64,000 nt of DNA. Source: Rhodosorus marinus CCMP1338 (taxonomy: Eukaryota; Plantae; Rhodophyta). Made by a program: the position numbers and the translations under genes. The DNA is taken from contig JAMWBK010000004.1 in assembly GCA_029953675.1 (NCBI GenBank), forward strand, positions 930,001-994,000. Reading direction: 5' to 3'. This document shows, piece after piece, positions 45,183-59,924 of this stretch. The notes below the pieces were generated by a model. It had not been told where the DNA came from. It made no database searches and saw only the letters and a list, made by a program, of their open reading frames with translations. Within the stretch, counting starts at the first letter, position 1. Every line of letters begins with the position of its first letter.

Positions 45183-46928
45183 TTATGCTTCGACGGGGGT
45201 GAACGTGTAGGTGCAGGTAGCGTTCTGGTAGTACGCATCGCACGACACCTGGTAGGGCTCGGTTGGCGGGTAGAAAGGCATCGCGTTGATGACCGTCCCT
45301 CGAATTGCGGCGTACAGCATCGCGGAGATTCCTCCAGAAATAGGGAGGGTGATGATCCATGAGAGCCCGATCTTTCCAATCAGACCCCAGTTGCTCTTTT
45401 TAAAGCCGTCAGGCTCGTAGAGCCCGATCGCTATGACAGCACCGATCAGGCAGTGGGTGCTGGAAACCGGGATACCGACGTACGAGGCGATGAGAACGGT
45501 GAAAGCAACAGCAAGCTGTGCGCACTGGCCCCTGAGAGGAGTAACGACCGTCAGGTTCTCACCGATCGTCTTCATGACCTTGGCTCCGAAGAAGTACAGA
45601 CCGAAGATGATGAACACGCAGCAGTAGAAGAGCGCCCAGTAGACCGGCTGCGGGGTCTCGACCAACGCACCGGTGTTCAAGGTCTGGTAGATAGCCTGAA
45701 GGGTTCCTGCCGCGTTGGAGATGTCATTGGCTCCCGCAGCGAACGACATGTAGCAGGCTGACAGGACTTGACCGCCTGCGAAGCGCTTCTCGATCTGGAA
45801 GTCCCACACATCGTCTGGCTTGTACAGACTCACATCCTTCTTGTTGCCTTCACCACCAATGAACTTGGTGATGCGCTCGAAAAACTTCCTGATCTGACTC
45901 TTTTGCCTGCTCTGCTTGACTCTGTCCACAGTCACAGTCGTTCCCATTCTCGACAACTTCGCCTCGTCAGTCACCAAGTCCATAGAGTACATGGGTCTGA
46001 TCTTGACTCCGTCCTCCTCGTTCAGAGACAGCTGCTGGTTCAGGTTGTCCTCGATCAGCTCGTCAAGGAATCTCTGGTTCTCTTCCTCGACGAAGCCTCC
46101 GCCCAGATCCATTTTGTCCAGCTTCTTGTTGGTTAGGCCGATCGCCCAGAAGTATCCGACGATTGCCACAATCACACCACACCCAATGGCAATACCCGCG
46201 GCCGGACCGTACCAGTATTCGTCGTAGAGTCCATATCGGACAGTTGTGATGACGAACATGACTGTCGTGAATGTGACGAGGAACCAGACGAAAGCGGTGT
46301 AGATGTGCTGCCTCAGGAGAGCCACCGGCCTCCATTCGGGGTCGTACTCGTGAGTATCCCTGAATGGAATGCAGATCCAGTATTTGGCGGCGAGGTAGAA
46401 GGCCGAGGCAAAAACTCCAGCCAGCAACGGTGAAATAACCCATGAGATCACGATCTTTCCAACTCCCGGCCACCATTGGATTCCACTCGCTCCCAGCTCA
46501 ACCAGCCCAAAGCCAATGGTCGCTCCGACAATGGCGTGCGTGGTACTGACCGGCATGGACAGCCACGTAGCCAGGGACACGAACATACCAGCTGAAAGAG
46601 CGGACGTGAGCATTCCGAGCATGTAAAGGGAGGGGATCTCCTGGAAGTCAGTCCAGCTGACGATGCCCTTTCCCACTGTCTTCGTAACCTGACCCCCGAG
46701 GGCCATCGCACCAAGTGTGATGAAGACGGAGGCCAGGATGCAGGCCATCCTCACGGTCAGTACTCTCGATCCTACGGAAGTTCCGAACAAGTTTCCGACG
46801 TCGTTGGCTCCCATGGCCGCGGATTGCCACATTGTGGCGAACAAAGCCACTGCGAAGATCCAGGTGAACGGCCCCAAGACTTGGGCTGCCACATCGGGCA
46901 TAATATTCACCACCTCTGTCGCAGACAT
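45183..46928 (-). CDS. PiT/PHO4-family inorganic phosphate transporter (581 aa)
   Basis: Two signature halves GANDVGN...PVSTTH and GANDISN...PVSSTH, multiple TM helices, acidic central loop; TA-rich TATA-like tract ~100 nt upstream (47013-47040). Confidence 0.95.
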   Translation of the reverse strand: MSATEVVNIMPDVAAQVLGPFTWIFAVALFATMWQSAAMGANDVGNLFGTSVGSRVLTVRMACILASVFITLGAMALGGQVTKTVGKGIVSWTDFQEIPSLYMLGMLTSALSAGMFVSLATWLSMPVSTTHAIVGATIGFGLVELGASGIQWWPGVGKIVISWVISPLLAGVFASAFYLAAKYWICIPFRDTHEYDPEWRPVALLRQHIYTAFVWFLVTFTTVMFVITTVRYGLYDEYWYGPAAGIAIGCGVIVAIVGYFWAIGLTNKKLDKMDLGGGFVEEENQRFLDELIEDNLNQQLSLNEEDGVKIRPMYSMDLVTDEAKLSRMGTTVTVDRVKQSRQKSQIRKFFERITKFIGGEGNKKDVSLYKPDDVWDFQIEKRFAGGQVLSACYMSFAAGANDISNAAGTLQAIYQTLNTGALVETPQPVYWALFYCCVFIIFGLYFFGAKVMKTIGENLTVVTPLRGQCAQLAVAFTVLIASYVGIPVSSTHCLIGAVIAIGLYEPDGFKKSNWGLIGKIGLSWIITLPISGGISAMLYAAIRGTVINAMPFYPPTEPYQVSCDAYYQNATCTYTFTPVEA

Positions 46929-52001: not shown

Positions 52002-54059
52002 TCAGCATGAGGTTGGGACGGAGCATGTCTTGGCAACTGAGCAGCGGGCCTCGATCTGGCACGTGTTAGGAATTGAGCACGTGGCAGCGATGCTGCACGA
52101 CCTAGGAACTCTACAGCTCTTCGCTGCCTTGCATTTCTGGAAAAATGTGATGAAGCAAGTTCCAATTGTTTCAAATCCGCATACTGCCCCATCGGTGATA
52201 GTATCCCATCCACAAATCGCACCGTCTCTGACAATCCTGGTTCCGCACTTGGCTGCACTCGTGACGACTATGCTACCACAGTTAGAAGCACTGGTAACAG
52301 TCCTAAACCCACATTTGGATCCATCAACGATTGTAGCGAGTCCGCACCTGGTCCCGTCGGTGATCAACTTTGATCCACACATCAGCACTGCAGAGTTAGC
52401 CCACGTTGCTATCTCACGCTCGACGCTGCTTCCCATATCTGTGAAGAACTGGGCGGTCTCCTGAATTGCCGTCCTTCCAAAAGCCTCGACCTCACCGGAC
52501 GCATCGTAGATCGAAGCCGCAATCACGTCGCCAGTATCCTCGAAGAAGTCACCCGCCTCGTTCACCACCCAAACGACCTTGCCAGCGACCTCCTTAATCT
52601 TCGCGGTAAAGAACTTGTCGACACCTCCGACCTTTACGCGACAGCTGGCCGAGGCGTTGTCGTAGTTGTATCTGAAATGTAGCGTGAAGGATATTTGGGC
52701 TGTAATACCAGCCCCAATCATGATCTGGACCTCTTCAGTGTTGACCAGGAGTCCAAATTCAAGGGAAGGCGTATCGCCCTCATCTAGCCCGTCCAGGATG
52801 TTGCTCAGGTTTGAAGTGGGAAGGTTAAGTGCTCCGAACCAGTCAGCGTACTCAATGATAGCCTCGACAGCCTTGAGAATGTTCTTGCCGATGGACTTGA
52901 TCACCTCCACCGATCCAAAGCTCGCATTTGCAGATAGGTAGAACCCTGGAAGCAATGTTGTGCCCTTAGCGGTGACCTGGTTGTACGTCGTTGCGAACGC
53001 CGAGAACTCGGCGAGCTGCTGTTCAGGAATGTCTGGAAGGATGCCCCTGGTGACTTTTTTGAGCTGGAGCGACATTGATATCTGTCCATGGATGAGCACG
53101 GAGATGTCAAAGTGTGACACGATTGAAAGAATATCATCACCAGCACTGCTTCCAATCTTGAACGCCCCGATCGAGTTAGAGAACGATTGACGCGAGCCCT
53201 TTACGTTGACTACGCGCTCCAAGAAGCCTCCGAGCGAAACCCAATTTGGAAGTTTGAAGGTTTTTGGGGAGATCTTGACCGAAACACGGTCGTGGTAGGT
53301 CCCTTGAACGTTCGCTTCCTCGACACCGTTTTCGCCGGTGAAGAGCTTCGCAGTGGCAGTGAAGGCATTACTCATGGAAAGCCCCGCGGCGACTTGGTCT
53401 AGGGCTACCTCGGACGCTTTGGAAAGGGCGGCACTGATTCCTGCCGTTGACGATACCGCAGCTGTCGATCCCAGGAAGCAGGAGATCAGTCCTTTGTTCA
53501 GCGCAATAGAAAAGCTCGGCGTGTTATTGCAGTCCAAACTGAAGGCCAGGCACATCGACATCTTGGAGCCTGGCTTGACTTGCGGGCAGATCGGCGTGAT
53601 CACCGGAAGGTTGAAGGCGATCATTGTCCAGTTCTCATCGTATCCCAGAGGAAGCACCTCGCATCCGCTCGTGATGAGGTCCGGCTCGGTCTCGATCTCT
53701 GAGCCATCGAAATCTCCCAAACATATCGGGCTCTTCCAGTAATTGTCAGCCACCGGGTGGGAGCTGACCATGAAATCCGCCAGTTGGTTTACTGCCGACC
53801 TAGCGATCATGTTAAGAACAGCTCCGATAGCAGGATCCGATGAGCCTAGGACGATGTCACCAATCGCATTCCTCAACTCACCCTGAAGATCTTGGATCGT
53901 GTGGCACCCTAGAAACCCCTCTGCACCATCGGGGAAGATACCCCGTAAAGGACAAGTCTGCCTCGACACAGTATCAAAACCAGCCCCGTCCATTGGTACT
54001 CCAGAACAGAGCGCAGTGAAACCAACTAGGCCAAGCAGTAGATAGCCAGTCCTCGTCAT
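52002..54059 (-). CDS. Secreted 685-aa protein of unknown function with Cys-repeat C-terminus
   Basis: Long uninterrupted ORF, signal-like MTRTGYLLLGLVGFTALCSG; seven 11-aa CG-x5-(DG/SA)-x2 repeats, CFITFFQK, seven 6-aa C-x5 repeats and a terminal C. Confidence 0.88.
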   Translation of the reverse strand: MTRTGYLLLGLVGFTALCSGVPMDGAGFDTVSRQTCPLRGIFPDGAEGFLGCHTIQDLQGELRNAIGDIVLGSSDPAIGAVLNMIARSAVNQLADFMVSSHPVADNYWKSPICLGDFDGSEIETEPDLITSGCEVLPLGYDENWTMIAFNLPVITPICPQVKPGSKMSMCLAFSLDCNNTPSFSIALNKGLISCFLGSTAAVSSTAGISAALSKASEVALDQVAAGLSMSNAFTATAKLFTGENGVEEANVQGTYHDRVSVKISPKTFKLPNWVSLGGFLERVVNVKGSRQSFSNSIGAFKIGSSAGDDILSIVSHFDISVLIHGQISMSLQLKKVTRGILPDIPEQQLAEFSAFATTYNQVTAKGTTLLPGFYLSANASFGSVEVIKSIGKNILKAVEAIIEYADWFGALNLPTSNLSNILDGLDEGDTPSLEFGLLVNTEEVQIMIGAGITAQISFTLHFRYNYDNASASCRVKVGGVDKFFTAKIKEVAGKVVWVVNEAGDFFEDTGDVIAASIYDASGEVEAFGRTAIQETAQFFTDMGSSVEREIATWANSAVLMCGSKLITDGTRCGLATIVDGSKCGFRTVTSASNCGSIVVTSAAKCGTRIVRDGAICGWDTITDGAVCGFETIGTCFITFFQKCKAAKSCRVPRSCSIAATCSIPNTCQIEARCSVAKTCSVPTSC

Positions 54060-59100: not shown

Positions 59101-59222
59101 AGCTCTCTGTAAACCAGTTACCCTATCTGCATGGGACTATATTAGTCTGTGCTCAGCAACTGGGTTGCTGTGAGAGTTGGGATGGCCGCTGTACACTGCG
59201 ATGAAAAATATGTGTGGGAAAG

Positions 59223-59924
59223 ATGGTGTTTGAATTATACCGGGAGGAGAACAGACCAGACGTACAGATGGATACTCTAGGCTATGAAAAGCGGACCCGG
59301 CCACGCCCGCGGCGTCCGGGGATGTACGGAATTTGCTTCGAAGACGAAGATGTGCTTAGACTGACTGGAGATGATCTAGTTTCAGTGCTGGCAGACTATG
59401 TAGAGGATCTTTGTAGCTTAAAAAGTGGAGGGGAGCAGACGGACGTATTACTGCAATCGTTTGGGCGACGGAATCAGACGCTGAAAATCAAAGACTACAT
59501 CTTGAGGCTGTACAAGTACCTCGATTGCTCTGATGCCTGCTACATCATAGCCCTGGTCTATATGGAGCGACTGCGAGCAAGAACCCGCCGATTGTCATCG
59601 TACAACAATGCTAATATGCATAGAATTTTTGCGGTTTCAATGCTGCTCGCGATCAAGTACCTGGAGGACGTGTGCTACACAAACGATGACTACGCAACTG
59701 TCTTTGGCATGAGAGGAATACAGGAGATCAACCTTCTCGAGAAACGAATGCTATCGATACTTGGATTCAACCTGTACATATCCACGGCGGAATACTTCGA
59801 CCTCAAAGCTCGTCTTGTGCGCGACCATCTATACAATACCGCGCGGCCTCGCTTGACGTTCCAGGTCACACGAAGCCACGGGGTATCGAGAGATGCATGT
59901 GAACGTCTCGCTCAGGAAGCTTAA
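59223..59924 (+). CDS. PHO80-like cyclin (cyclin P/U class); start codon uncertain (59223 or 59268)
   Basis: IKDYILRLYKYLDCSDACYIIALVYMERL...NMHRIFAVSMLLAIKYLEDVCYTNDDYATVFG...EINLLEKRMLSILGFNLYIS matches the PHO80/PCL cyclin-box pattern. Confidence 0.9.
   Translation: MVFELYREENRPDVQMDTLGYEKRTRPRPRRPGMYGICFEDEDVLRLTGDDLVSVLADYVEDLCSLKSGGEQTDVLLQSFGRRNQTLKIKDYILRLYKYLDCSDACYIIALVYMERLRARTRRLSSYNNANMHRIFAVSMLLAIKYLEDVCYTNDDYATVFGMRGIQEINLLEKRMLSILGFNLYISTAEYFDLKARLVRDHLYNTARPRLTFQVTRSHGVSRDACERLAQEA

Follow-up and report, generated by a model that had tools for sequence, protein, structure and literature searches.

What structure and what role can be assigned to a protein tail that packs 16 cysteines into its last 125 residues, spaced by one interval ahead of a short aromatic loop and by another interval behind it? 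The question is raised by an intronless gene of the unicellular red alga Rhodosorus marinus CCMP1338, located on the minus strand at 52002..54059 of the window (the whole stretch of 64,000 nucleotides that was analysed, by whose numbering all positions are given) and encoding, according to the list of open reading frames (ORFs), 685 amino acids followed by a TGA stop codon. Among the genes called on contig JAMWBK010000004.1 of GCA_029953675.1, the nuclear genome assembly of this alga (PMC10250338), is one for the identical protein. We propose that the C-terminal 125 residues very probably form a nested, asymmetric cystine-ladder hairpin, in which the cysteines of one arm are stapled to those of the other.

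Probable pairing of the two cysteine arms

The stretch at 52002-52410 comprises residues 550-685 (52005..52410) and the stop codon, and its cysteines are split 8 + 8 about the motif CFITFFQKC. Arm 1 (residues 561-634; 52158..52379, minus strand) is made of six 11-residue units and one 8-residue unit, each beginning with Cys-Gly, and its cysteines lie at residues 561, 572, 583, 594, 605, 616 and 627, a spacing of 11 repeated six times. The two central cysteines, 635 and 643, each follow an 8-residue step and enclose the tip CFITFFQKC (residues 635-643; 52131..52157, minus strand), a hydrophobic, aromatic loop at the midpoint of the 16-cysteine list. Arm 2 (residues 644-685; 52005..52130, minus strand) consists of seven 6-residue units of the form Cys-x-V/I-A/P-x-S/T with cysteines at 649, 655, 661, 667, 673, 679 and 685, a spacing of 6 repeated seven times, and the protein ends in ..CSVPTSC, the sixteenth ladder cysteine C685 being its final residue. 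These positions confirm the units and the 8 + 8 layout listed by the first-pass annotation, made from the letters of the window, while the 11-residue period that it gave for the CG units holds for six steps and fails at the seventh unit, which has 8 residues. All 16 tail cysteines and their layout are unchanged across the window protein and its two full-length paralogs, despite identities of only 55% and 45%, so that chance does not account for the pattern. Tandem Repeats Finder detected no repeat at the DNA level in the ladder gene, so the periodicity is old and upheld at the protein level, and an artefact of recent tandem duplication was ruled out on the same ground.

Homologs were collected with HMMER, run exhaustively against 1.84 billion representatives, each standing for a cluster at 50% identity, of which 197 matched the window protein. 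A word-indexed protein search returned only two paralogs from the single sequence and only 12 proteins from a 42-sequence ladder alignment. Parity and midpoint were assessed in 105 modules, all of which have three or more consecutive spacings of 11 residues. The total number of ladder cysteines was even in 92 of these 105, and in the even ladders the midpoint of the cysteine list coincides with the point where the spacing drops from 11 to 6 residues. This switch is a short hydrophobic and aromatic loop, often with basic residues, as in CFITFFQKC, CVSSLFSSC, CGWNWFTGLFGGKSAKSC and CLINPLKWGKC. Among the complete ladders 80 of 86 had balanced arms, against a mean of 35 +/- 4.4 and a maximum of 52 when the arms were re-paired at random in 10,000 permutations that combined arm 1 of one protein with arm 2 and tip of a different one; the homologs therefore keep equal repeat counts, as the first-pass annotation had expected of a stapled hairpin, rather than varying the two independently. 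The number of cysteines per arm ranges from 5 to 15 in the complete ladders and is odd (5, 7, 9, 11 or 15) in 46 of the 86, which makes purely within-arm bonding impossible in them. Apart from these counts, irregular units are matched across the arms. In P0034, P0060 and P0072 a rare 15-residue unit of arm 1 stands opposite an equally uncommon 10-residue unit of arm 2 at the same rung from the tip, in P0094 an 18-residue unit stands opposite a 12-residue one, and in P0020 (15 + 15 cysteines) two alternating types of arm-1 unit stand opposite alternating 6- and 10-residue units of arm 2.

The same register is marked by covariation. With arm-1 unit i paired with arm-2 unit N-2-i, which defines the nested register, position 4 of arm 1 and position 5 of arm 2 share a mutual information of 0.299 bits against 0.077 +/- 0.016 after shuffling (z = 13.6), a value reached in 0 of 2000 shuffles of the arm-2 units within each protein. 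Of 179 rungs, 121 set an acidic residue of arm 1 (D/E) against a basic one of arm 2 (K/R/H). In the nested register z is above 4 for seven position pairs, among them V/I at position 6 of arm 1 with V/I at position 3 of arm 2, and the coupled pairs fall on antiparallel diagonals. A full position-by-position scan gave a single pair above this value in register -1 (position 7 of arm 1 with position 6 of the neighbouring unit in arm 2) and none in registers +1, +2 and -2. As judged from the aligned family, these patterns demonstrate that the two arms touch in a nested antiparallel register.

The structure predicted by AlphaFold2 (AF2) is consistent with this arrangement. A prediction from three paralogs only gave a predicted local distance difference test score (pLDDT) of 32 and was replaced by one from a 67-sequence alignment, with a mean pLDDT of 84.9 and a predicted template modelling score of 0.75. 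Here every 11-residue unit of arm 1 has a strand of 5 residues at positions 3-7 and, after it, a helical turn of 4 residues, the last of which is the cysteine (pLDDT 84-95), and arm 2 is a near-continuous strand over residues 649-682 with a one-residue break per unit (pLDDT 85-94). The family profiles, in percent, are C100 G87 .. V/I81 T55 D/S/N91 A/G80 A59 for arm 1 and C100 x V/I72 A/P81 x T/S78 for arm 2. By the rules of helix capping a polar residue serves as N-cap and Gly as C-cap, and the D/S/N at position 8 and the Gly at position 2 of the arm-1 profile fit these roles.

In the proposed architecture, arm 1 would lead outward in 11-residue units, each a strand followed by a one-turn helix that ends at the cysteine and is capped by Gly; the chain would reverse at the hydrophobic, aromatic tip, and arm 2 would return as 6-residue strand units, every one of them antiparallel to one arm-1 unit, with a disulfide closing the rung. 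The pairs would be C561-C685 at the base, C572-C679, C583-C673, C594-C667, C605-C661, C616-C655 and C627-C649 along the shaft and C635-C643 at the tip. The number of rungs would set the length of the finger, which from strand geometry (~20 A per rung) would come to ~140-160 A in the window protein if straight. We infer the disulfide bonds themselves, and likewise how straight and how long the rod is. The nested, stapled hairpin that the first-pass annotation had put forward as a hypothesis is in this way strongly supported by arm balance, odd arms, matched insertions, covariation and the predicted structure.

Carriers, possible role and alternatives

The matching proteins fall into three classes, which cover the body of the window protein only (query residues ~30-555), the ladder only (~555-685, attached to N-terminal parts that are unrelated) or both. 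The body was found in at least seven paralogs of Rhodosorus (P0001-P0004, P0006, P0011 and P0016), in the red alga Bangiopsis (P0008, transcriptome), in the labyrinthulomycete Mucochytrium quahogii (P0012 and P0015, transcriptome) and in the diatom Seminavis robusta (P0057), where it is fused to Kringle domains. It is a separable module that occurs in other proteins without the ladder, namely P0004, P0006, P0011 and P0016 of Rhodosorus, P0015 of Mucochytrium and P0057 of Seminavis. Most of the ladder-only proteins originate from metagenomes. The neighbourhoods of P0024 and P0032 are dense with bacterial-type genes, and the TldD gene adjoining P0024 is nearest to Haliangium, Kofleriaceae and Polyangiaceae, by which its contig is myxobacterial; the contig of P0020, 178 kb in length, has sparse gene calls and is eukaryote-like. 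The domains that accompany the ladder include Peptidase_S8, Peptidase_M23, trypsin, GH16 and trefoils of the Ricin-B and fascin type as well as SLH, dockerin, TSP3, metallophosphoesterase and beta-lactamase, all of which are extracellular enzymes and binders. Judged by this distribution, the ladder is a mobile extracellular module of myxobacteria-like contigs, red algae and a labyrinthulomycete. A degenerate DNA pattern of one arm-1 unit, a narrow test, had no match in viral contigs.

Many ladders are followed by further sequence. A conserved domain of ~70 residues stands behind those of P0021, P0025, P0032, P0033, P0084, P0152 and ~40 others, with cysteine spacings near 36-6-17-10 and often with C-A-P-F at the C-terminus of the protein; it has no match in Pfam or NCBIfam and may serve in sorting or attachment. 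The P0024 group (L005/L006) has a different post-ladder domain of ~190 amino acids, which a genome scan with P0024 also located in a protein of a Rhodothermales metagenome-assembled genome (L007 1744-4200) that carries cysteine-rich repeats of another kind and is without a ladder.

As the chain doubles back to its base, the ladder is a projecting finger and not a linker or spacer between domains, and the tip is its sole distal feature. Aromatic residues make up 14% of the tips, compared with 6% of arm 1 and 2% of arm 2, and are present in 77 of 87 tips; clusters of Lys or Arg are frequent in the tips, and many members have a Lys-rich arm 2. The aromatic and basic tips, the Lys-rich arm 2 and the partner domains together suggest an adhesive or anchoring finger, the tip of which would hold secreted proteins on a surface, be it a membrane or an anionic polymer of cell wall or mucilage, and which in Rhodosorus marinus would dock the body of ~500 amino acids. 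This anchoring or docking function, drawn from tip composition and domain partners, is offered as a tentative suggestion that may well prove wrong, while the proposal as a whole, in which nested hairpin and anchoring function are blended, is modestly favoured.

Several observations weigh against this picture. Arms were unbalanced in 6 of the 86 complete ladders and totals odd in 13 of the 105 modules, most of which look truncated or mis-delimited, and the subfamily of P0073, P0079, P0125 and P0143 has a 15-residue unit without a matching insertion in arm 2 and a cluster of extra cysteines near the tip. The representatives are less than 50% identical yet of common ancestry, by which the permutation statistics may be inflated. 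AF2 is unsure at the tip (residues 630-648, pLDDT 52-65). In the window protein the tip has one basic residue only and an acid-base pair occurs in only 1 of 6 regular rungs, and the functional claim is based solely on composition and domain partners.

The alternative that survives best, although we think it unlikely, is that the ladder is a passive rod, either a rigid protease-resistant strut or a fibre-forming oligomerisation shaft, with a tip that has no binding role. A range of 5 to 15 rungs with conserved unit chemistry would suit such a rod, as would a ribbon face rich in Thr, Ser and Ala that could pack with other copies, and the SasG-type repeats of staphylococci show that beta rods can be long and thin while lacking a classical core. 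However, a chain that comes back to its origin cannot space two domains, and the aromatic, Gly and basic character kept by tips in distant homologs suggests selection on the tip.

A second alternative takes the whole protein as a membrane machine, a fusogen or pore-forming spike in which the ladder presents a fusion loop, and follows the first-pass annotation, which had proposed a membrane-inserting spike, adhesin or fusogen-like protein. Its appeal lies in the hydrophobic, aromatic tip that ends a disulfide-stabilised beta-hairpin and in a beta-rich body with long strands and a low-confidence helical segment rich in Ala, Ser and Gly (residues 189-217 in AF2). But Foldseek found no significant match in PDB, solved fusion proteins included, or among viral models, the sequence of the window protein has neither a transmembrane anchor nor a hydrophobic C-terminus, and the two modules are independent, the ladder being attached, with no body present, to peptidases, to a glycosidase and to lectins, in bacteria too, and the body occurring without the ladder. 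A membrane-inserting role was thus not established and a fusogen is unsupported, which we regard as quite improbable; the presence of ladders on peptidases, glycosidases and lectins points to a general module of surface attachment or projection rather than to a fusogen.

With respect to the pairing itself, each arm might fold alone through local disulfides, arm 2 for instance as a narrow beta-helix, and the equal counts would then be coincidental. The cysteine at every sixth residue of arm 2 recalls antifreeze proteins of the Tenebrio type, and with 8 and 8 cysteines pairing within the arms is arithmetically possible in the window protein. Against this, more than half of the complete ladders (46/86) have odd arms, arm counts correlate from 5 to 15, insertions are matched by rung and covariation is confined to the nested register, while AF2 gives extended strands instead of a coil and Foldseek no beta-helix antifreeze match in PDB, so that we consider local pairing extremely improbable and retain the nested hairpin. 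Scarcely credible, finally, is that a regular Thr-rich face binds ice or another crystalline lattice, for although Thr is frequent at strand positions 3, 5 and 7 of arm 1 and position 6 of arm 2 is Thr or Ser in 78% of units, the sheet is only two-stranded, a marine alga that is mesophilic and myxobacterial contigs of soil type are among the carriers, the partners are hydrolases and lectins, and no structural match to antifreeze proteins was obtained.

The rest of the gene and its surroundings

Ahead of the ladder, the protein begins with a predicted signal peptide (residues 1-20, MTRTGYLLLGLVGFTALCSG; 54000..54059, minus strand), read from the sequence as a basic start followed by a hydrophobic core and small residues (CSG) ahead of VP. 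The N-terminus thus looks like that of a secreted protein, in line with the first-pass annotation; AF2 places a helix of low pLDDT at residues 2-16 of it. The body module follows (residues ~21-528; 52476..53999, minus strand) and contains 9 cysteines. In the AF2 model it has ~20 beta-strands between residues ~110 and 517, some of them 14 residues long, along with several long helices, mostly at pLDDT 80-95. It is joined to the ladder by a helical linker (residues 529-560; 52380..52475, minus strand) predicted as helices 529-545 and 548-557 with pLDDT above 90, and the conserved Trp of this linker (..ATWANSAV..), W553, is unchanged in both paralogs. The beta-rich body of ~500 residues with a helical linker that was described in the first-pass annotation is accordingly borne out by the predicted model, with its ~20 strands and the helices of 529-557. 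Most members of the family have a conserved C-x10-C pair just ahead of the body end, the first cysteine of which is Phe in the window protein, so that C473 (52641-52643) is left without its customary partner and the cysteines of the mature protein number 25, an odd total.

The two full-length paralogs (P0002 and P0003), 55% and 45% identical to the window protein, are located on other contigs and have different neighbours. Near them are a HemolysinCabind protein (RTX-type calcium-binding repeat) and a Pel9A-like beta-helix protein, both of them secreted-looking repeat proteins (L003 17966-19330; L001 1-1208). The window has few long ORFs and is eukaryote-like, and nothing at the ladder locus is of viral or toxin kind. 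It contains a complete gene for a PHO4-family phosphate transporter of 581 amino acids (45183-46928, minus strand), a second, partial PHO4 ORF of 207 amino acids (40594-41217, minus strand) that may be a fragment or a single exon, and, at 59214-59924 on the plus strand, a Pho80-like cyclin (PF08613). The ladder gene is thus flanked by two PHO4 ORFs and a Pho80-like cyclin, a phosphate-themed neighbourhood that the paralogs do not share. Besides, the G+C content of the window peaks at 36001-40000 (58-59% against 42-53% elsewhere), where two long ORFs (37419-38525 and 38904-39983) have no Pfam match, and a C2 domain (PF00168) is encoded by the ORF at 31389-32105 on the plus strand, which probably represents a single exon of a longer gene.

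Comparison with known systems

No family had been recognised in the first-pass annotation, and this holds, for the protein has no sequence match in Pfam, NCBIfam or PDB. Neither the window protein nor its paralogs scored above threshold in any Pfam-A or NCBIfam family, and in the ~130 homologs scanned no model of these two collections covers the ladder, the partner domains alone being matched. Foldseek against 350,542 PDB chains gave no significant match (best E 0.15, probability 0.08, template modelling score ~0.1), nor did it give one among the viral models of BFVD (best E 0.03, probability 0.04). Searches of PDB sequences with phmmer and a profile returned scytovirin only (E 0.024), a chance C-x5-C match. 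The body likewise has no match in Pfam, PDB or BFVD. Of the structural checks proposed in the first-pass annotation, AF2 gave a strand pattern that fits the hairpin and Foldseek revealed no similarity to solved structures. In the literature no description was found of a disulfide-ladder hairpin, of CX10C together with CX5C, or of a cystine ladder of this kind. The ladder is an undescribed family of unusual architecture.

If the model holds, the ladder is a new extracellular building block, a thin rod, probably rigid and protease-resistant, with its length set by disulfide rungs. It also poses an evolutionary puzzle, as two distant and different repeat arrays must alter their copy number in step. 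The ladder is common in environmental sequence data, where it has no family name and no solved structure or literature was found, and a name for the family would allow 'hypothetical' proteins to be annotated by the hundred in myxobacteria, red algae and protists of the stramenopile group. For the biology of red algae the module marks a group of secreted paralogs with at least seven members, and a hairpin pinned by disulfides, its length programmable and its tip free, is an attractive scaffold for protein engineering. A wider reading is possible, though short of probable in our view: a new fold and domain family, a length-tunable finger whose arms grow and shrink jointly, probably shared horizontally among myxobacteria, red algae and labyrinthulomycetes, that would serve generally to plant secreted enzymes and binding proteins on membranes or cell walls by its tip, with the body as a second new fold.

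The ladder belongs to none of the known systems with which we compared it. HAP2-type class II fusogens have a beta-rich ectodomain of three domains, a hydrophobic loop at the tip of a disulfide-stabilised beta structure and a membrane anchor. The likeness lies in a hydrophobic loop that ends a beta structure on a beta-rich extracellular protein; unlike them, the window protein has no PDB fold match and no anchor, and the ladder is also present on unrelated enzymes and in bacteria. In the antifreeze beta-helix of the Tenebrio type, cysteines occur at every sixth residue, the sequence is rich in Thr and the disulfides are local to each coil. The ladder likewise is Thr-rich and has six-residue cysteine spacing over tens of residues, but in arm 2 only; arm 1 has a period of 11, the counts, odd arms and covariation demand bonds between the arms, and Foldseek gave no match.

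Twin Cx9C (CHCH) and CX3C hairpins carry regularly spaced cysteines on antiparallel helices in nested pairs that form two disulfides, have equal spacing on both arms and reside in the mitochondrial intermembrane space. The ladder differs in combining C-x10-C with C-x5-C, in arms that are predicted strands, in its putative disulfides, of which there may be up to 15, and in being secreted. Full-length-paired arms that are kept equal, giving a projection of tunable length, are shared with the coiled-coil stalks of SMC and dynein and with SasG-type beta rods, which are coiled coils or three-stranded sheets without disulfides. In contrast to all of these, the ladder is built of two differing repeats, an 11-mer and a 6-mer, gained or lost jointly.

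The comparison in nested pairing itself is with theta-defensins, protegrins, tachyplesins and gomesin, which are two-stranded antiparallel hairpins with nested, ladder-like disulfides, often cationic and hydrophobic and active at surfaces or membranes. Both have nested disulfides over an antiparallel hairpin, deduced for the ladder from convergent evidence, although PDB sequence profiles and Foldseek gave no sequence or fold match between these peptides and the ladder. The peptides are free, ~18 residues long and symmetric, with 2-3 rungs, whereas the ladder has 8 rungs in the window protein (5-15 in homologs), 11 residues per rung on one arm and 6 on the other and a helical-turn bulge in each arm-1 unit, and is built from repeats within proteins of 200-1000 amino acids, here of 685. 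The ladder can be regarded as a version of the known principle of the disulfide-stapled hairpin, with a fair chance that it deserves the status of a new fold.

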